A model generated the notes under the pieces. It was given only the letters and a program-made list of their open reading frames with translations. It was not told the DNA's origin and did no database searches. A stretch of DNA of 64,000 nt, from the NCBI RefSeq assembly GCF_032062105.1, contig NW_026928947.1, positions 1-64,000 on the forward strand, given 5' to 3'. Both the position numbers and the translations under genes were made by a program. Positions within the stretch are counted from its first letter, which is position 1. Each line of letters starts with the position of its first letter. Shown here in pieces: positions 1 to 58,900 of the stretch. This stretch comes from Saccostrea cucullata. Its lineage: Eukaryota.

Positions 1-3000
1 GGGTTTGTCTATAGCATAGACAAAACCAGGGACATTGGCAACTGGTACCACTTACACTACTCATTCAGAATGTGACTTGAGTACAACTGGATGCACACAT
101 GACTCCATGCCAATGCTCCTTATATTCTTCTGGGAAAAAAATAATACATAGACTTGTAGCTGAGATAAAAAGGGATGGTAAGAATGTCAAAACATGAAAA
201 TTGAAAAAAGAAAATGAACTTACCTTCTTCAATGTGTTTTTGCTGCAAGCAAGTGCACACGAAGCACTGTTGTTTCTTGGATTCTATCACAACCAAGGCT
301 ATGTACAAGTCACATTCTGAAGTTTTATGAGTGAGTGGCTCAAACAGCTTTTTAATCATCAATCGGGTTTGTCCATAGCGTAGACAAAGCCAGGGACATT
401 GGCAACTGGTACCACTCACATTTTTCATTCAGAATTTGACTAGAGTACAATTGAATGCACACTTGACTCCATGCCAACGCTCCTCATATTCTTCTGGAAA
501 AAGAATAATACATAGACTTGTAGCTGAGATAAAAAGAGATGGTAAGAATGTCAAAACACGAAATTGAAAATAAAAAATGAACTGACCTTCTCAATGCGTT
601 TGTGCCGCAAGCAAGTGCACACCAAGAACTGTTGTTTTTTGAATTCTATCACAACCAGGGCTATGTATAAGTCACATTCTGAAGTTTTATGAGTGAGTGG
701 CTCAAAACAGTTTTTCTTATCCACTGGGTTTGTCTGTAGCATACACAAAACCACAGACATTGCCAACTGGGACCACTTACACTACTCATTCAGAGTATGT
801 CTTGAGTGCAGCTGAATGCACACCTGATTCTATGCCAATGCTCCTTATATTCGTCTGGGAAAAATAATACATAGACTTGTAGCTGAAATAAAAAGATATG
901 GTCAGAATGTCAAAACATGAAAGTGAAAAAATAAAATGAACTAACCTTCTTCAATGTGTTTGTGCAGCAAGCAAGTGCACACCAAGCACTGTTATTTCTT
1001 GGATTCTATCACAACCAAGGCTATGTGCAAGTCACATTCTGAAGTTTTAGGAGTGAGTGGTTCAAAACAGTTTTTTAATCCACTGGGTTTGTCTATAGCA
1101 TAGACAAAACCAGGGACATTGGCAACTGGTACCACTTACACTACTCATTCAGAATGTGACTTGTATAAAGCTGAATTCACACTTGACTCCATGCTAATGC
1201 TCCTTATATTCTTCTGGGAAAAATAATACATAGACTTGTAGCTGAGATAAAAAGAGATGGAAAGAATGTCAAAACATGAAAATTGAAAAAAAATAAAATG
1301 AACTTACCTTCTTCAATGTGTTTGTGCTGCAAGCAAGTGCAAACCAAGAACTGTTGTTTCTTGGATTCTATCACAACCAAGGCTATGTACAAGTCACATT
1401 CTGAAGTTTTATGAGTGAGTGGCTCAAAACAGTTTTTTAATCCACTGGGTTTGTCTATAGCATAGACAAAACCAGGGACATTGGCAACTGGTACCACTTA
1501 CACTACTCATTCAGAATGTGACTTGAGTACAAATGGATACACATGACTCCATGCCAATGCTCCTTATATTCTTCTGGGAAAAAAATAATACATAGACTTG
1601 TAGCTGAGATAAAAAGGCATGGTAAGAATGTCAAAACATGAAATTGAAAAAATAAAATGAACTTACCCTCTTCAATGTGTTTGTGCGGCAAGCAAGTGCA
1701 CACCAAGAACTGTTGTTTCTTGGATTCTATCACAACCAAGGCTATGTACAAGTCACATTCTGAAGTTTTATGAGTGAGTGGCTCAAAACAGTTTTTTAAT
1801 CCACTGGGTTTGTCTATAGCATAGACAAAACCAGGGACATTGACAACTGGTACCACTTACACTATTCATTCAGAATGTGACTTGAGTACAACTGGATGCA
1901 CATATGACTCCATGCCAATGCTCCTCATATTCTTTTGGGAAAAAAATAATACATAGACTTGTAGCTGAGATAAAAAGAGATGATAAGAATGTCAAAACAT
2001 GAAAATTAAAAGAATAAAATGAACTTACCTTCTTCAATGTGTTTTTGCTGCAAGGAAGTGCACACGAAGCACTGTTGTTTCTTGGATTCTATCACAACCA
2101 AGGCTATGTACAAATCACATTCTGAAGTTTTATGAGTGAGTGGCTCAAAACAGTTTTTTAATCCACTGGGTTTGTCTATAGTATAGACAAAACCAGGGAC
2201 ATTGGCAACTGGTACCACTTACACTAATCATTCAGAATGTGACTTGAACGAAGCTGAATTCACACTTGACTCCATGCCAATGCTCCTTATATTCTTCTGG
2301 AAAAAAAATAATAATAGACTTGTAGCTGAGATAAAAAAGCATCGTAAGAATGTCAAAACATGAAAATTGAAAAAATAAAATGAACTTACCTTCTTCAATG
2401 TGTTTATGCGGCAAGCAAGTGCACACGAAGCATTGTTGTTTCTTGGATTCTATCACAACCAAGGCTATGTACAAGTCACATTCTGAAGTTTTAGGAGTGA
2501 GTGGCTCAAAACAGTTTTTAATCCACTGGGTTTGTCTATAGCATAGACAAAACCAGGGACATTGGCAATTGGTACCACTTACATTATTCATTCAGAATGT
2601 GACTTGCATGTATCAGCAATGTCACTTCAGTTCTTATCTGCATTGTGCATGCTCCATAGATTCTAATGTAAATAGAAATTAACTGAGACTTGCAGATACA
2701 GCATACTGTATAGGGGGAAAATAACTCGCGGTGTTAATATTCGCTATATTCACGGTGATAATAAATCCGCGAATTCAAGAAACAGTGAATAATTTTTCAA
2801 TAATCTCCACGTTTTATTTGGAAATTTGAGAATAAACTACGACAGGTTTAAAAACATGTACCACAGTACATGGTCATTTCAGTAATTACGAGTAGTGCTT
2901 CACATTCAATTAGTTTAATTAGCAGGCTTACATCAACAGTTAATTATCTGTATTTGATAAAATGCTTTTTAATAGCCAACGCTACATGTTTCATCAATCA

Positions 3001-6000
3001 AAACACGTGGGCCATGAGTTTTGATTACCAGTGCGTAACAAATGTTACCACGCACGATTATCATGCATATCATAGTTTTTATCGACATTTTGATTTTTAA
3101 AAAAAAATCATTCAAATAAGTATCGAACTAACTGAAGATTTGGGAGGATATTATTTCCATAATTACCTTCATTAACACAGTTATTACCGTCCAGTGGTTT
3201 TTTTCGCCGCGTTGTTTTGAAAATCTTAGGATGTACAAGCACTCATTGTAACAGCATACAGAAAAGTCATTTGACGTTTATAGTCAAGGATATTTTGTAA
3301 CTGTACCTGATTTAATTAATCGTCATTATTTATGAAGTCTATTTTGTATTAAACTACCTTGCTGTTCCTGAAATTAAGACATAACGCTGATTAATGTCGT
3401 TAACATGTAGCTATGGTATGGATTAAACGGATAAAGACAAGGGAGGTGACTTCTATAAAATAAGAATTCCGCGAATTAAAGAAACAGCGATCCTGTACGA
3501 TGAGAGAAAACCGTGAAAATTACAACCCGTGAAATTAATCCCCTATACAGTATATAAAAACATATGAAGGGGAGAATGAAAATTTTCCCTTTTTTCAGTG
3601 TATTGTGTCTGTCCTGCAACATGTGAACATCAAGCACTGCTGTACCCTTGGCTTTTATTACTACCACGACTATATACAAGTCACATTCTGAAGTTTCATG
3701 AGTGAGTGGCTCAAAACAGTTTTTTAATCCACTGGGTTTGTCTATAGCATAGACAAAACCAGGGACATTGGCAACTGGTACCACTTGCACTACTCATTCA
3801 GAATGTGACTTGAGTACAACTGGATGCACACATGACTCCATGCCAATGCTCCTTATATTCTTCTGGGATAAAAAATAATACATAGACTTGTAGCTGAAAT
3901 AAAAAGGGATGGAAAGAATGTCAAAACATGAAAATTGAGAAAAGAAAATGAACTTACCTTCTTCAATGTGTTTTTGCTGCAAGCAAGAGCACACGAAGCA
4001 CTGTTGTTTCTTGGATACTAAGTCACATTCTGAAGTTTTATGAGTGAGTGGCTCAAACAGCTTTTTAATCATCAATCGGGTTTTTCCGTAGCATAGACAA
4101 AACCAGGGACATTGGCAACTGGTACCATCCATATTTTTCATTCAGAATTTGACTAGAGTACAATTGAATGCACACATGACTCAATGCCAGTGCTCCTTAT
4201 GTGCTTCTGGAAAAAGAATAATACATAGACTTGTAGCTGAAATAGAAAGAGATGGTAAGAATGTCAAAACATGAAATTGAAAATATAAAATGAGCTGACC
4301 TTCTGAATGCTTTTCTGCTGCAAGCAAGTGCTCACCAAGAACTGTTGTTTCTTGAATTCTATCACAACCAGGGCTATGTATAAGTCACATTCTGAAGTTT
4401 TATGAGTGAGTGGCTCAAAACAGTTTTTCTTATCCACTGGGTTTGTCTGTAGCATACACAAAACCACAGACATTGGCAACTGGGACCACATACACTACTC
4501 ATTCAGAGTATGTCTTGAGTGCAGCTGAATGCACACCTGATTCCATGCCAATGCTCCTTATATTCTTCTGGGGAAAATAATACATAGACTTGTAGCTGAA
4601 ATAAAAAGATATGGTCAGAATGTCAAAACATGAAAGTGAAAAAATAAAATGAACTAACCTTCTTCAATGTGTTTGTGCAGCAAGCAAGTGCACACCAAGC
4701 ACTGTTATTTCTTGGATTCTATCACAACCAAGGCTATGTGCAAGTCACATTCTGAAGTTTTAGGAGTGAGTGGTTCAAAACAGTTTTTTAATCCACTGGG
4801 TTTGTCTATAGCATAGACAAAACCAGGGACATTGGCAACTGGTACCACTTACACTACTCATTCAGAATGTGACTTGTATAAAGCTGAATTCACACTTGAC
4901 TCCATGCTAATGCTCCTTATATTCTTCTGGGAAAAATAATACATAAACTTGTAGCTGAAATAAAAAGAGATGGAAAGAATGTCAAAACATGAAAATTGAA
5001 AAAATAAAATGAACTTACCTTCTTCAATGTGTTTGTGCAGCAAGCAAGTGCGCACCAAGGAATGTTGTTTCTTGGATTCTATCACAACCAAGGCTATGTA
5101 CAAGTCACATTCTGAAGTTTTAGGAGTGAGTAGCTCAAAACAGTTTTTTATTCCACTGGGTTTGTCTATAGCATGGACAAAACCAGGGACATTGGCAACT
5201 GGTACCACTTACACTACTCATTCAGAATGTGACTTGAGTATAAATGGATACACATGACTCCATGCCAATGCTCCTTATATTCTTCTGGAAAAAAATAATA
5301 CATAGACTTGTACCTCAGATAAAATGGCATTGTAAGAATGTCAAAACATGAAATTGAAAAAATAAAATGAACTAACCTTCTTCAATGTGTTTGTACGGGA
5401 AGCAAAGTGCACATCAAGCACTGTTGTTTCTTGAATTCTATCACAACTAAGGCTATGTACAAGTCACATTATGAAGTTTTATGAGTGAGTGGCTCAAAAC
5501 AGTTTTTAATCCACTGGGTTTGTCTATAGCATAAACAAAACCAGGGACATTGGCAACTGGTACCACTTACACTACTCATTCAGAATGTTACTTGAGTACA
5601 ACTGGATGCACACTTGACTCCATGCCAATGCTCCTTATATTCTTCTGGGAAAAAAATAATACTTAGACTTGTGGCTGAGATAAAAAGGGATGGTAAGAAT
5701 GTCAAAACATGAAAGTTGAAAAAAGAAAATGAACTAACCTTCTTCAATGTGTTTTTGCTGCAAGGAAGTGCACACGAAGCACTGTTGTTTCTTGGATTCT
5801 ATCACAACCAAGGCTATGTACAAGTCACATTCTGAAGTTTTATGAGTGAGTGGCTCAAAACAGTTTTTTAATCCACTGGGTTTGTCTATAGTAGAGACAA
5901 AACCAGGGACATTGGCAACTGGTAACACTTACACTAATCATTCAGAATGTGACTTGAACGAAGCTGAATTCACACTTGACTCCATGCCAGTTCTCCTTAT

Positions 6001-6608
6001 ATTCTTCTGGAAAAAATAATAATAGACTTGTAGCTGAGATAAAAAAGCATCGTAAGAATGTCAAAACATGAAAATTGAAAAAATAAAATGAACTTACCTT
6101 CTTCAATGTGTTTATGCGGCAAGCAAGTGCACACGAAGCATTGTTGTTTCTTGGATTCTATCACAACCAAGGCTATGTACAAGTCACATTCTGAAGTTTT
6201 AGGAGTGAGTGGCTCAAAACAGTTTTTAATCCACTGGGTTTGTCTATAGCATAGACAAAACCAGGGACATTGGCAATTGGTACCACTTACATTATTCATT
6301 CAGAATGTGACTTGCATGTATCAGCAATGTCACTTCAGTTCTTATCTGCATTGTGCATGCTCCATAGATTCTAATGTAAATAGAAATTAACTGAGACTTG
6401 CAGATACAGCATATATAAAAACATATGAAGGGGAAAGAAAATTTTCCCTTTTTTCAGTGTATTGTGTCTGTCCTGCAACATGTGGATATCAAGCACTGCT
6501 GTATCCTTGGCTTTTATTACAACCAAGACTATATACAAGTCACATTCTGAAGTTTTATGAGTGAGTGGCTCAAAACAGTATTTTTTAATCCACTGGGTTT
6601 GTCTATAG
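1..6608. repeat. ~360-bp tandem repeat array (17 hairpin centres visible, continues off the left edge), organised as an ~8-monomer higher-order repeat
   Basis: The GTCTATAGCATAGAC-type core recurs near 7, 371, 732, 1091, 1453, 1812, 2175, 2535, 3740, 4085, 4445, 4804, 5164, 5522, 5884, 6242 and 6601 (truncated). Diagnostic variants recur with ~3.71 kb period (ATCATCAATCGGG at ~355 and ~4068; GCATGTATCAGCAATG at ~2606 and ~6314). Confidence 0.97.
2706..3550. mobile_element. Non-autonomous DNA transposon (MITE, TA target duplication) inserted in the tandem array
   Basis: TIRs CTGTATAGGGG...CCCCTATACAG, flanked by TA at 2704-2705 and 3551-3552. The paralogous empty site CAGCA-TA-TATAAAAAC is present at ~6407-6422. 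Confidence 0.93.
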
Positions 6609-6681: not shown

Positions 6682-6770
6682 TGCTTGCAATACCAGGGGT
6701 CCTGAGTCAACACGCCGAAGTTGGTTCAACGGCATCGTATTGACTCTTAACCCCTGTCATTGCGAAGATG
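6682..6770. mobile_element. Short fold-back relic related to the MITE at 34169-34494
   Basis: Shares CCAGGGGTCCTGAGTCAAC with 34181-34199 and has an imperfect inverted partner TTGACTCTTAACCCCTG. Confidence 0.5.
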
Positions 6771-8345
6771 GTAAACAAAATTCAATACGATACATTTTCA
6801 CGTGTTACTTAGCTCTAAAATCGTAAATTTAAACTCTGGACATTGCCATTAAACGCAAGAAAATCTCTATACCTGATTTTTGTTTCTTTTTTCCCAATAC
6901 ACGTCTTTTTTTAATCTCTCCTATTTTCGTGCATCCAAATCATCCGCGGCCTACAACTCGTGTGAAGTCATGGTAACCATATCCGGGTTCCTTGTAATTG
7001 TAAGGCTCAAAGCAGATACGGTGTAAAATCCGGGAATTAAAAATATATTAGAGGTAGGGAGGGGTGTTTAACATCTTCAAATTAAAAAAGAATGAAAACT
7101 TAGACTAAATTGCTCTGAACAATTTACGGTATAACTTTCGAAATGCTGTTTTGCTTTGAAAATTACAAGTAATGTCTGTATTTATACTGTATTAGGCCTA
7201 TACTTGAACAGAACATTTTGTCCTACACCTGTTAAATCTAATACATAGTTAGACAATAATTATATAGGCCTAGTTAGCGATCTGCATTTTGACTAAGATA
7301 ATTTCCTTGTTGGTACCTTTTCTGTCCAAGTCAACCACCTAACGACTATGATGTTAGCCTTTGAACCTTATAAGATCTACAGTACTATAAAAAGATATCT
7401 CTCTTGTTTCATGTCTATTTTTTCAAAATAAATATTTTAATGAAGTTGAAGCCAACATCAAACATATTTATATGGAACAAACCTCTATGGATGTTTTCTT
7501 CTTTGTGTATTTTGCAAGTTCTTACTCTGCTCTTTTTCACAATCCACAAACTTTCGCGCTGTGTAACTCTTTGGTTACCACGTTGAATGCTTCCTTGGTA
7601 ACCCATTTTCATTCGGAAGTTTTAATTGGCGGATCTAACTTTTTACCTAAACGGTAAATATTTTTTGTCTGTTGAGTTAACTACAAAGTGGAAACTAAAA
7701 GGTATGTAATTCTATAGATGTATTTAAATTTGATCGTTCCAATTTTAAACCATTTTAGTTGGTGAGAGGGATGAGGCACAGTCAAGGTTAGTAAAATTTC
7801 TTGAAACTAATAAAATGATCAGTCGACAATCAAGAACGTTGTTTAAAAGAAAATTCCCTTTAATAAGCTTTGATTTCTAGTGTGTATTATATCAGAGATA
7901 TTAAAGGAAAACACTTATTCATGTCTCTGGTATAATACTTGAACCGTAATCAATGACGAAGTGTTGAAATATTTGTAACATTTTTTTCTACGATAAGTGC
8001 CTCCTGCAACATCATTCATGGGGGACATGGAATGTGATATGGGATGTATCACAACAGAAAGATCAAAGAAAAAGGCCACAAATCTGCAGTGTCAAGCAGC
8101 CCTATAGCTGAAACTGAGAGACCCTTAGCTTTAGTTAGTTTATCTTCTTAAACAGACAACATACATACATGTATACTGTATACAATACAATATAAAAGAC
8201 ACTTATTCAGTACAATACAGTACAATATATCTTTATTTTATCAATTAATCAAGTAATCATCATTGCCATTTTCTTTATTCAGCTACAGTCCTGTTTCACA
8301 CTGCATGGATTACAGATCTGTGACAGTTTGATATAACGTTGCATA

Positions 8346-9909
8346 TCAACGCCTGGCTACCAGCCATACTTCGTTGTGCCTCATGTTGTAGGGTTCTGAA
8401 GGACCATTGTACCCAGCAGAGAGGAAGGCATTGTTATCATATAAATATCTGTTATTAATGTCACTCTTCAGTTCTCTGACTTTAGCAAGCTTTGTTCTGT
8501 AATTCGAGTATCCACCATAAGATCTTGAACAAAAAAATATTAAAAATTTATTAAATTAGTTTGAATGGAATTTCCCCCCACAAATACATATCATGGTAAT
8601 ATAGATTTGTATTCTTGGTGTATTACGGAAAATTGGAGGAAACTCATCAACTATTTCTCTTCCTGAAACAATCATACAGAAGTAATAAATGAACAGGATA
8701 CATTTAAAGACCTTTGACACCGACTCTCCAATTTGAGGAGATAATCCATCAGCTGCTACAGAGACTGGGTATGTCTTTATCATTTATTTTAAAGTAGTGC
8801 TGATTTAATTATTACATTTTCAATTAAAAATAAAATTTGTGTGTCATATTTCATAAAAACATAGGTCCACTTCATTTTTGATGTTGCCCTTTTCACTTCC
8901 CATTTTCCTTTGTTCAATTTAAAAGCAATTCAATCTCACGATTTAGGCTTGTAAGTTTTATCGTACTTACTTAACGTAGACGTCCATTTGAGGAAGCATC
9001 TTGAGGTAAACTGTGGGGTCGTTTGGTTGAGGGGCGTATCGCTTCATGTTATGGGGGACCATAAACAACATTTCCTTCATGGTCCATTGGTTATTATACA
9101 TCCCTCTCTCAGGGGTATATGTACTGAGCACGGGAGCAGTCATTGGAATCTTCAACCCTGCAGAAAATTGTTCATGTTACGAATTTAAACAAATGAAATG
9201 TTTCGGCTGTTTTGTGACTTGCTGATTTTTTTTTCTCGTATTTTATAATTATGTACCTCTTTCATTGTTCCCGGAAATATAGGAGAACAACTTAGAGAAA
9301 GCCGAGTCTCTCCGGGAAGAGGACATCACATTCCGTGTCCCGACCCACAGCGACGGCTCGTACCTCCTCAGCTCATATCCCTAATTAAACAAAAGAAAAT
9401 ATTTCTAGTTATTTATTCGGGTATTCATAAATTATTTGATATTGATACTTAACTTGCGCCAACTTTTCATAATGTGCACAGTTTGAATAAATTGTGAACG
9501 TAAAATTACAATTATGAAATATACATGTAATACAAGTAGTATGCTAAAATAATGGTTGAAGCATAAAACACTTTAGATCACTTCCACAAATATATTTCTA
9601 TGTAATTTTCGATAAAATTGAAAGCACAAATAATGTGTAAATGCTTAACAGAAGTAAAAAAAATATATAGAATCGAGGAAAAAAGTAACACGCCAAAAAA
9701 AAAAGAATAAAATAAAATGAATAAATATACACGTGTAAATAAAATGCTTGCTCTCACGGATGTGTTACAAAATTAGGGCCATGCAGGGAACTTACATTAT
9801 ATCTTTCTATGACTCTATACTTTGGACAGTCGAGCTCTCTCTCACAAGGCTGAGGGTATCTGGGTGTGACCAGGACAAGAAGAGATGCCAGTACAGTCAG
9901 TCGAAACAT
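8346..9909 (-). CDS. SOUL-family heme-binding protein (HEBP2-like), probably secreted, ~200 aa; coding exons 9909-9796, 9380-9257, 9157-8971, 8523-8346
   Basis: Spliced translation MFRLTVLASLLVLV...LDCPKY...GYELRRYEP.LWV...FSKLFSYISGNNE..KIPMTAPV...PQPNDPTV...VYVKSYGG...AGYNGP...RHNEVWL carries the SOUL motifs. All introns are GT-AG and phase-compatible, and the N-terminus is hydrophobic. Confidence 0.92.
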
Positions 9910-47881: not shown

Positions 47882-49543
47882 GCTTTGAACTTCCGTTCTT
47901 TACCAGAATTCCCCCTTGTTATACATGTTGTGACCCCACCCTACCCAACTGATGATAATTTAAACAATTTGAAATCTACACTACCATAGGATGCTTTGAT
48001 TTAACATAGTAAAACTTTGATTCCCCATTGTGGCCCCACCCTACCCCCGGGGGTGACATGATTAGAACAATTTAGAATCTACACTATCCCAGGATTCTTC
48101 CACATAAGTTTCTGCTTTTCTGGCCCAGTGGTTCTTGCAAAAAAGATTTTTCCTATATATTTCTATGTAAAACTTTGATTCCCCATTGTGGCCCCGCCCA
48201 ACCCCCGGGGATCATGATTTTTACAATTTAGAATCTACACTACCCCAGGATGCTTCCACTTAAGTTTCAGCTTTTTTGGCTCAGTGGTTCTTGAGAAAAA
48301 GATTTTCAAAGATTTTTCCTATATATTGCTATGTAAAACTTTGATCCCCCATTATGGCCCTGCCCAACCCCTGGGGGTCATGACTTTGACAATTTGGAAT
48401 CTACACTACCCTGGGATGCTTCCACATAAGTTTCAGCTTTTCTGGCCCAGTGGTTCTTGAGAAGAAGATTTTTAAAGATTTTTCCAATATATTTCTATGT
48501 AAAACTTTGATTCCCCAATGCGGCCCTGCCCAACCCCCGGGGGTCATGACTTTTACAATTTAGATACGATATAAAGCTTCCACATAAGTTTCAGCTTTTC
48601 TGGCCCAGTGGTTCTTGAGAAGAAGATTTCTAAAGATTTTTCCAATATATTGCTATGTAAAAGTTTGATTCCCAATTGTGGCCCCGCCCTATCCCCGGGT
48701 TGTCATGATTATAACAATTTAAAATCTACACTTCCCCAGGATGCTTCCACATAAGTTTCAGTTTTTCTGGCCCAGTGGTTCTTGAGAAGAAGATTTTAAA
48801 AGATTTTTCCTATATATTTCTATGTAAAAGTTTGATTCCCCATTGTGGCCCCGCCATATCCCCGGGGGTCATGATTTTTATAATTTAGAATCTGCACTAC
48901 CTAAGAATGCTTTCACCTAAGTTTCAGCTTTTCTGGCCCAGTGGATCTTGAGAAGAAGATTTTTAAAGATTTTTCCTATATATTTCTATGTAAAAGTTTG
49001 ATTCCCCGTTGTGGCCCCGCCCTATCCCCGGGGGTTATGATTTTAACAATTTAGAATCTGCACTAAAACAGCTTTTCTGGCCCACAAAATTGTGGCCCCG
49101 CCCTATCCCCGGGGGTCATGATTTTAACAATTTAGAATCTGCACTACCTAAGGGTGCTTTCACATAAGTTTCTTATTTCCTGTCCCTGTGGTTCTTTATT
49201 ATAAGATTTTAAAAGATTTTTCCTATATATTTCTATGTAAAAGTTTGATTCCCCATTGTGGCCCCGCCCTATCCCCGGGGGTCATGATTTTAACAATTTA
49301 GAATCTACACTGCCAGAATGCTTCCACATAAGTTTCAGCTTTTCTGGCCCAGTGGTTCTTGAGAAGAAGATTTTTTAATGACCTCACCCTATTTTTGTCT
49401 TTTCTTGATTATCTCCCCTTGTGAGGGGACTTGGCCCTTCATTTTCATAATTTAAAGTCCCCTTTATGTAAGGATGCTTTGTACCAAGTTTGGTCAAAAT
49501 TGGCCCAGTAGTTGTGCTCCTGAGCCTTGTCATGAGCTAAAAA
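47844..49543 (+). mobile_element. Helentron-type non-autonomous element carrying ~9 copies of a 166-bp Cg170-like satellite
   Basis: Starts AAACAAGAGGCCCATGGGCCACATCGCTCACCTGAG and ends TGAGCTAAAAA. The unit TAAAACTTTGATTCCCCATTGTGGCCCC...CAGTGGTTCTTGAGAAGAAGATT recurs every ~166 bp. Confidence 0.88.
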
Positions 49544-55900: not shown

Positions 55901-58900
55901 GGGAAGCAGTATATTACAACTCCCCATGGCTGAGAAATCAAATAGTTCTGATGTTCCTTCAAGATACCTTCAGAATAACCCCCAGCTTTCATTACCTTTG
56001 CGACAACCTCTTGTTGATATGACCAATGTCTTAGAGTCATTTGATACTGGAAGGTCAAAGGAGAACAGCCAAAATGAAAGAGAAAATCTGAGCAGGGTAC
56101 CTCTCTCCAAATATTTACCTGTTTTATGGAAATCTGTTTTTGATTCCCAAAACACTCAAAGTGATTTAGAAGAGGAAGAGGAGAAACCTATGACAGATAG
56201 AGAATTTCCAAAGACCTCAGAAGGTCAGGAAAGGAGGGTAAAAAGATCAAGGAAACTTCAAATACCGGTCAAAAGTGCCCAAAGATTGGATCCAAACTTC
56301 AGAGGGGCCACTGTAATACTGCACACAGAAATAAAGAATAAAAACTGTAGTCTCACTCTATCAGCTCATTTCAGGTGAGTAGATAGAAAACATTGGTAAA
56401 AATGAGTCTGTTTTCCATATCATAAAACAACAGGTATACAAAATATTTTTACATATACCGTATATATATTATATCATATGTTACTACATGGTATAAGTTA
56501 TAGGTTACATATATCATAACTTTGGTATCTCAAACATAAATATCTAGAATACCATGAATACGTCAAAATCAGAAGGAAATCCAGTTCAACCTTAATTCAA
56601 ACTTGGTATGTTGAATCTTCAGATTTCTTTAAGTTTATTGTTCATCCCATCAAGAAAATATAATGAGATTTGACTGTATATATTTTCAGTAATGTAAAGA
56701 TCTACAAGCAGCAGCCCTGCAGAAAACGGAAGCACAGTGGTTCCTACTCCAACGCGGACTCTGTGAGTGGCTCTGATGAGGAAAATACAATTCCATTCCC
56801 AAAGGATACCCATTACTCGGGTGATTTTCTGAATATTTTTCACCTGCAATCTTCTGAATTGTGTAAAGACAAAGTAATGATCTAAATAAATTGGTCTAAA
56901 AAAGCATAGAAAGTATATGAAATTCATATTTAAAAGAGAGTTAGTGAAGCAGGTTCATTTGTCAGTGCCAGATGTTCAGAGGTGTTCAGGGAGCCTGGGT
57001 ATCACCATACACAAAAAATCTTACACCTGTTTTCCCTTACAAAACTGTGTTTATCTTACAACATTTGTGATTAGAACCATGCATTGCTTTAAAACTTAGG
57101 ATTATTCTAAGTTTAAGCTGTTGTCATCATTTTTAGCTCTACTGGTCAGAGACCAGAAGAGCTTATGTTTGACCGTATATATCCTCCTACATTTTTAGTC
57201 TGATTTCAATATTACTTGGCACACAAGTAGACTACATTAAGATACATAGAATAGTGCATCGGTTTTTGATTTCGATGAACGGTGTTGCCATGGTTACTAA
57301 AAATAGAATTTTCTGTGAAATTCCACAGTTTTGGTCTGTTTTCAATATAACTTGGCACACAAGTAGACTACACTGACATAGAATAGTGCATCAGTTTTTG
57401 ATTTCGATGAACGGTGTTGCCATGGTTACTAAAAATAGAATTTTCTGTGAAATTCCTTAAAAACGACTCCTTCTACAGTTTTGGTCTGATTTCAATATAA
57501 CTTGGCACACAAGGATACACTATACATAGAATAGTGCATCAGTTTTTGATTTCGATGAATGGTGTTGCCATGGTTACTAAAAATAGAATTTTCTGTGAAA
57601 TTCCTTAAAAACGCTACTCCTTCTACAGTTTTGGTCTGATTTCAATATAACTTTAGACTACACAAAGAAACACCTAATTTTGATGAACGGTGTTCATGGT
57701 TACTAAAAATAGAATTTTCTGTGAAATTCTTTAAAAACACTACTCCTTCTACAGTTTTGGTCTGATTTCAATATAACTTGGCACACAAGTAGACTACACT
57801 AAGATACATAGTATAGTGCATCGGTTTTTGATTTCGATGAACTTTGTTGCCATGGTTACTAAAAATAGAATTTTATGTGAAATTCCTTTAAAAGACTCCT
57901 TCTACAGTTTTGGTCTGATTTCAATATAACTTGGCACACAAGTAGACTACACTAAGATACGTAGAATAGTGCATCGGTTTTTGATTTTGTTGAACGGTGT
58001 TGCCATGGTTACTAAAAATAGAATTTTCTGTGAAATTCCTTAAAAACACTTCTACAGTTTTGGTCTGAATTCAATATAACTTGGCACACAAGTAGACTAC
58101 ACAAAGATACATAGAATAGTGCATCAGTTTTTAACAACGGTTTTGCCATGGTTACTAAAAATAGAATTTTCTGTGAAATTCTTTTACTCCTTCTACAGTT
58201 CTGGTCTGATTTCAATATAACTTGGCACACAAGTAGACTACACTAAGATACATAGAATAGTGCATCTGTTTCTGATTTCGATTAACGGTAATTTTCTGTG
58301 AAATTCCTTAAAAACGCTACTCCTTCTACAGTTCTAGTTTGATTTCAAAATAGGTTGGCACACAAGTAGACTACACAAAGATACATAAAATAGTGCAATG
58401 GTTTTTGATAAGTACAAACCAGTAGAGCTACAGTCTCGACAGAGACTTCTGGTTTATTAATAAATACACTTAAATTCTTTTCTGGTTCATCATCTCCATT
58501 ATGTTGCATCTTGTTAAAAGTATTATGACCATTGTTGAACAATATTACAGGTAAGATCTGTGCCTCCTGTGGGACCCATAGAACCCCCCTCTGGAGAGAC
58601 GCTGATGATGGAACACCCCTCTGTAATGCTTGTGGAATCAGGTGAGACTATTTCCCTCTTCTTTACTACAAGACTTTTGAAATTGTATAATTTAAATCTC
58701 TGCCATCATAGTTCATGAAGCACATGGACATTTGAACATCTCTAATTTAAATGCTTGTTCCTAAGCAAATTTTATCCATTGCACTGTAAGTGAAGGTACT
58801 GGATTATTGGTATGGAGATTACTGGAAATGAGATTCAACTCTTCTTTATAGCTTTTTTCACCATCTCCTATTACAGTTGTATCATTAAATATCCCCAAAA

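Follow-up and report, generated by a model that had tools for sequence, protein, structure and literature searches.

The minus strand of the first 6,608 nucleotides of the stretch of Saccostrea cucullata DNA analysed here (64,000 nt, containing no N; hereafter the window) carries a tandem array of hairpin exons belonging to a multi-locus family of tandem hairpin-RNA genes that is apparently undescribed. It is highly probable that these are transcribed non-coding genes whose hairpin is under selection, and there is about an even chance that they are spliced, transcribed by Pol II and a source of a lineage-specific microRNA that Drosha and Dicer-1 excise from the hairpins. A literature search, itself incomplete, found no published description of the hairpin family. 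The initial annotation had proposed an amplified non-coding hairpin gene rather than an inert satellite, and this is borne out by an upstream head, constraint between loci, retention of splice donors and contigs of assembled RNA. The main features of the window are:

1–6608, minus strand: tandem array of ~360-bp exon-plus-intron units, truncated where the contig begins and containing 17 copies of the hairpin
Hairpin starts in this array: 1 (partial), 306, 668, 1028, 1390, 1749, 2111, 2472, 3677, 4019, 4381, 4741, 5101, 5460, 5821, 6180 and 6536 (partial)
1390–1525, minus strand: representative 136-nt conserved fold-back, with outer stem, irregular middle and apical stem-loop
1308–1573, minus strand: representative 266-nt non-coding exon (266–276 nt in other arrays)
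1214–1307, minus strand: representative 94-nt intron, GTAAGT...CCCAG, with donor G at 1307 and acceptor AG ending at 1214
2706–3550, no strand: unrelated TA-flanked inverted-repeat element in one spacer, with an empty site in the duplicate near 6412
6770–7050, minus strand: head block B, a candidate for a second promoter or an exon; conserved, with 31 matches in the genome, one to each locus, and bearing a donor-like GT (6872) and an X-box-like motif (6967–6977)
7415–7620, minus strand: head block A, a candidate for the promoter with the first exon; conserved, with 28 matches in the genome, one to each locus, and bearing an E2F-like motif (7552–7559) and an X-box-like 14-mer (7590–7603)

The outer stem of the representative hairpin comprises 16 bp (1525–1510 paired with 1405–1390) and its apical stem pairs 1445–1458 with 1462–1475, with one mismatch and a 3-nt loop. 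The fold is much more stable than chance would give, whichever strand is folded (z = −7.8 on the plus and −8.5 on the minus strand, with 0/200 shuffles equally stable). The positions first assigned to the stems, loop, donor, acceptor and intron were all correct on re-checking, while the fold-back said to lie in every unit is present in 17 copies, with z about −8, and has decayed in two monomer types (z −2.1 and −5.1). Within the window array the hairpin and the intron have accumulated variants at much the same rate (0.36 vs 0.35 per site), so that no selection is visible from the window alone and single copies appear weakly constrained. Nor are the hairpin copies of the array independent, since 304–2705 and 4016–6413 form a higher-order duplication (96.5%), after which the TA-flanked element entered, as the empty site near 6412 indicates. 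The contig start falls inside the array, whose 3′ end is therefore missing. A small palindrome at 6694–6756, separating the head from the first, truncated hairpin, is probably a tiny MITE; by eye it looks similar to m0044, a candidate hairpin of C. gigas (PMC4138081 Table S7).

Stop codons occur in all three frames of the 266-nt exon, as first reported (3–6 per frame), and each of 56 exons examined across loci has at least two stops in every frame, with lengths falling in all three phases; stops and frameshifts together rule out a coding reading. They likewise exclude a selenoprotein, which had been considered along with other coding readings for some variants at third positions of one frame. 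The open reading frame read through the repeat unit had no protein homologue in a length-limited search, and no host coding gene was found for the repeat units. The donor GT, whose survival across monomers had been remarked on, is kept in 13/13 regular monomers of the window array and is invariant in 14/14 locus consensuses, its exon-side neighbours varying; intron interiors are unalignable between loci, with the pyrimidine tract and AG retained, and exon length is held at 266–276 nt across arrays. In most arrays an acceptor precedes the hairpin and a donor follows it; the hairpin is intronic only where acceptors have been deleted. In one subfamily (L037, L044, L045) the 278-bp units have a donor only and the 322-bp units a dead donor, mostly with an acceptor; here hairpins would alternate between exon and intron, and the complementary loss of splice sites may reflect decay of unused donors. 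Splice sites had been described for each unit, which is accurate for the window; in some other arrays they are lost from many monomers and are thus not needed per unit.

The array was initially treated as a single locus, but a search of 1.17 Gb of genome for hairpin and head copies places it among about 30 related ones. Matches to the monomer are found on many further contigs, and two different hairpin words of 15–16 nt occur 571 and 557 times, compared to a single occurrence for a control, giving at least 571 hairpin copies. Among the matches listed, nearly all copies sit in arrays, and some 30 heads with about 19 copies each match the total hairpin count. Arrays are short, with periods of 278–408 bp in 18 fetched loci and 446 bp in another array, and hairpins at other loci are mostly 85–96% identical to those of the window. 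Two lone exact 15-nt matches to the 3′ side of the hairpin, outside the listed arrays (G000:C874:49173 and G000:C3871:20537), are possibly orphan copies or complementary sites. On each of two contigs a pair of genes with head and array stands in opposite orientation, 45–80 kb apart (G000:C2718 at 1.40 and 1.46 Mb; G000:C21811 at 0.30 and 0.38 Mb), suggesting spread by local inverted duplication. Other repeats of the window are a 166-bp oyster-type array and 126–153-bp repeats (48009–49311 and 57185–58397); the latter contain near-perfect X-box-like palindromes, and the 166-bp repeat is also present beside or within some of the hairpin arrays (L032/L033, L040, L048).

No Rfam family was assigned to the repeat by gathering threshold or E-value, and ARAGORN found no tRNA in it. 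A snoRNA host array or ribozyme satellite was rejected, there being no conserved C/D, H/ACA or hammerhead core in the alignment (by eye) and no Rfam hit, as were SECIS and IRE elements, whose motifs are not conserved (by eye). A pattern scan of metagenomes gave single matches only, which were taken as chance.

Selection becomes apparent when loci rather than monomers are compared. Among 14 locus groups (253 copies, one consensus per locus), between-locus divergence is 0.06 in the hairpin compared to 0.24–0.29 in the flanks, a four- to five-fold reduction; 112/136 hairpin columns are invariant across the 14 consensuses, compared to 24/80 in the 3′ flank, and the hairpin has fewer fixed differences than its singleton variants would lead one to expect (p = 2e-7). 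Hairpin distances correlate with flank distances (rho 0.49, p 0.003), from which it follows that hairpins were inherited with their loci, and which argues against recent homogenisation between loci. Ascertainment bias is limited, as loci found by the head also carry exact hairpin words. In the hairpin alignment 95% of cells are paired, a level reached in 0/500 shuffles, and covariation is seen in two pairs, both partners of which have changed throughout a subfamily (from U-A to G-C in one, from C-G to U-A in the other). These are just two single inherited events, and could have arisen by DNA template switching without RNA selection. Conserved G-U pairs are formed only on the splice-site (minus) strand; common single-side variants show no G-U excess on the sense strand in a G-U vs A-C strand test, and folding energies are approximately equal on both strands. 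Constraint extends to unpaired positions (0.89) and to the outer 16-bp stem, which covaries and is as conserved as the arms. A three-way junction formed by outer helices was predicted for the consensus and rejected, its pairs being often broken.

At all 18 loci with both coordinates the head lies 5′ of the array on the splice-site strand, where it would act as a Pol II promoter. We take the motifs of blocks A and B to be RFX X-box-like and E2F-like; motifs of this type are often seen in genes of the germline and of ciliated cells. Of 30 perfect matches to the X-box-like 14-mer in the genome, about 27 are at heads, even though heads elsewhere are just 70–79% like that of the window; the four heads that were aligned all have the same E2F-like word. 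Several arrays among the matches listed have no head. Upstream homology between loci fades with no sharp boundary, and downstream flanks have nothing in common except between likely alleles and for common repeats, with no 3′ end or downstream coding sequence common to non-allelic loci. The neighbouring gene (8346–9909, minus strand, four exons, signal-peptide-like start) encodes a SOUL heme-binding protein (PF04832) and ends ~600 bp upstream of the head; co-duplication with the hairpin family was considered and rejected, as SOUL paralogues lie on contigs without heads. Further along the window are an open reading frame with three PARP-type zinc fingers (PF00645; 12765–13724, minus strand), with no catalytic domain in this exon, and exons resembling UMP-CMP kinase by eye (16273–17773, plus strand).

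The family is represented in RNA, its sequence occurring in just one run. Assembled contigs of one long-RNA run (X1) from a close relative derive from spliced RNA, as judged by the SOUL gene, which served as a control and is covered in its exons only, with three CT..AC joints and 95–98% identity. In this run 322 contigs were aligned, concentrated on the hairpin exon, with up to 46 per hairpin site, mostly alleles of paralogues and including both compensatory types; one lies on head block A (7452–7573) and almost none on the diverged spacer. Intact hairpins are thus well represented in long RNA. Two contig ends, at 6135 and 6141, are at distances that both point to the predicted donor at 6097/6098, and the match of one contig piece breaks off at 6008, as that of a spliced molecule would. 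Some contig ends thus coincide with predicted splice sites, with no junction-spanning contig among those listed; as contigs show neither strand nor level, splicing and the transcribed strand of the hairpin genes are suggested rather than established.

We propose that the family comprises about 30 non-coding Pol II genes, each starting at a head whose motifs are of the RFX X-box and E2F types, and that the transcript would run through roughly 5–30 tandem units, mostly a ~267-nt hairpin exon plus a short intron, with the hairpin as the selected product. Drosha would crop the upper ~57–59 nt of the hairpin and Dicer-1 would free a ~22-nt microRNA from one of the consensus arms, 99–120 or 134–155; by analogy with miR-430 or C19MC, the high copy number would give a very large microRNA dose. 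Any mature sequence, target or tissue is likewise a matter of inference. In the representative hairpin the relevant elements are:

1466–1487, minus strand: candidate 5p arm, ending UGU; consensus 99–120, identity 0.948, inside the best-conserved part of the hairpin
1453–1465, minus strand: apical 13 nt, candidate Dicer-released loop; consensus 121–133, identity 0.845
1431–1452, minus strand: candidate 3p arm; consensus 134–155, identity 0.942
1423–1425, minus strand: mismatched-GHG-like element, G-A-G opposite U-A-C at 1493–1491, invariant in the locus consensuses

Conservation is saddle-shaped, the two arms exceeding the loop between them and outlining a 57-nt pre-miRNA; the apical 13 nt hold the compensatory C-G/U-A pair and five sites variable between loci. 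The GHG-like element, whose G-U pair is formed only on the minus strand, the basal UG and the apical UGU lie within 1–2 nt of one register, with cuts at ~98–99 and 155–156, if the spacing of such motifs to the Drosha cut site is as we presume. Mismatched GHG, UG and UGU are listed as processing motifs (PMC10954719); there is no CNNC at the expected place in the hairpin. Candidate seeds vary in 2–3 of the 14 loci, and no motif match was found among the C. gigas miRNA sequences compared. Kinship with mir-184 and mir-1992, which show partial resemblance, was rejected on account of different seeds and precursors. Canonical pri-miRNAs have a ~35-bp stem with single-stranded flanks at its base and do not need an outer stem, whereas here another conserved helix follows on from the stem where open flanks are expected. 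Similarly, canonical miRNA arms have at least ~16 paired bases and no large loops, and the candidate duplex has ~15 pairs with a 6x5 internal loop in its best register. The 6x5 loop and the conserved outer 16-bp stem count against a canonical microRNA, and the precursor would be atypical. Bivalves and other molluscs keep Drosha, DGCR8 and Dicer-1 (PMC4793324) and are without Dicer-2 and siAGO (PMC11114477), so that any small RNA would most likely be made through the microRNA pathway.

These same departures lend some weight to a different fate for the transcripts of these genes, which we regard as possible and clearly less probable than microRNA production, namely that the RNA acts uncut or is cut non-canonically. 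If uncut, it would be a structured, multivalent lncRNA with a dsRNA-binding protein bound to its repeated 136-nt module, and would serve as a scaffold, decoy, localisation signal or editing substrate; if cut non-canonically, the long fold-back would be diced without Dicer-2 into two successive duplexes. Either would make a new class, about 30 spliced transcripts of one 136-nt module serving as intact scaffold or decoy or as a source of non-canonical small RNAs. Conservation of all 136 nt, unpaired positions and outer stem included, fits such a role, as do the narrow range of exon lengths, the mostly exonic hairpin found intact in long RNA, and an internal loop poorly suited to a canonical miRNA duplex. 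However, the apical conservation dip and Drosha-like motifs are in line with cropping, and where acceptors are lost in the 278-bp arrays hairpins can be intronic, which suits co-transcriptional cropping more than a mature scaffold.

A neutral or selfish transcribed satellite, whose exon-plus-intron unit was copied head-to-tail and spread with its promoter by segmental duplication while gene conversion or template switching kept the palindrome alike, would account for the lack of constraint within the window array, the decayed copies, the many monomers without splice sites, the equal folding of both strands and the local inverted duplicates on two contigs. We nevertheless consider it unlikely, as hairpin divergence is four- to five-fold below that of adjacent DNA and subfamily alleles follow locus history, while the promoter-like 14-mer is kept exact and the donor GT remains invariant among varying neighbours. 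Still less probable are germline piRNA precursors, spliced transcripts cut into 26–31-nt piRNAs with the hairpin as a tag or incidental passenger. The common promoter-like head, with motifs frequent in germline and ciliated-cell genes, would suit them, yet piRNA precursors normally conserve neither fold nor a fixed 136-nt sequence. The piRNA pathway is kept in molluscs (PMC11114477), but the arrays have no transposon cargo in common. Least credible is a transposon origin, in which the repeat would be either a MITE that was amplified together with its flanks or the internal array of a non-autonomous Helentron/Ngaro-type element. The hairpin is indeed an inverted repeat in several hundred copies, but the arrays and their heads explain this number, non-allelic loci have no common 3′ end or downstream coding sequence, and upstream homology fades gradually with no long ORF in common. 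The dispersed MITE offered at first as an alternative fails on the same grounds, with copies in arrays, homologous flanks and a common head, and the transposon-borne reading is largely refuted.

If the product is a microRNA, then about 30 promoters would drive more than 570 hairpin copies of one undescribed lineage-specific microRNA, to our knowledge among the largest microRNA amplifications in an invertebrate, and a dosage-critical job would be indicated, for example embryo mRNA clearance, gametogenesis or genetic conflict. If instead the RNA is functional uncut, or dicing proceeds without Dicer-2, molluscs would have a new kind of structured RNA. There is a fair chance that the hairpin-RNA family represents a new class. 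Repeat masking and unique-mapping filters would conceal such a family from standard annotation.

Fish miR-430 and frog miR-427 provide a large dose of microRNA from canonical short hairpins and have an early-embryo role. They are high-copy tandem genes (PMC10417697); their canonical short hairpins set them apart from the oyster family, and no sequence relation was seen. The primate cluster C19MC, cited in the initial annotation as a parallel, consists of tandem 400–700-nt units; every unit contains a hairpin, and the Pol II transcript that spans them is non-coding and spliced (PMC2691840). The likeness in repeated exon-intron hairpin units holds, with splicing only suggested in the oyster, but C19MC is one locus of 46 intronic, Alu-flanked canonical pre-miRNAs (PMC2691840), whereas the oyster family has about 30 loci with their own heads and more than 570 copies of a hairpin conserved over 136 nt and exonic in most arrays. 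Drosophila hp-CG4068, with 9–20 tandem hairpins in one transcript and fast copy-number change (PMC10317233), also resembles the family in its tandem hairpin copies from one transcript. It requires Dicer-2, however, and as molluscs are without Dicer-2 and siAGO (PMC11114477) the fly hpRNA route that had been put forward is unlikely here; the oyster stems are moreover short and interrupted, with no source or target gene identified in genome searches, which the arrays saturate. The tandem mir-184 clusters of oyster (67 hits at two loci; PMC4138081 Table S8) are microRNA arrays in an oyster genome. The first of these clusters has a period of ~128 bp; the hairpin is short and canonical and differs in sequence and seed, and no exon-intron unit was seen in that paper's description. 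The oyster family is thus built like the C19MC, hp-CG4068 and mir-184 arrays and is a member of none of them.
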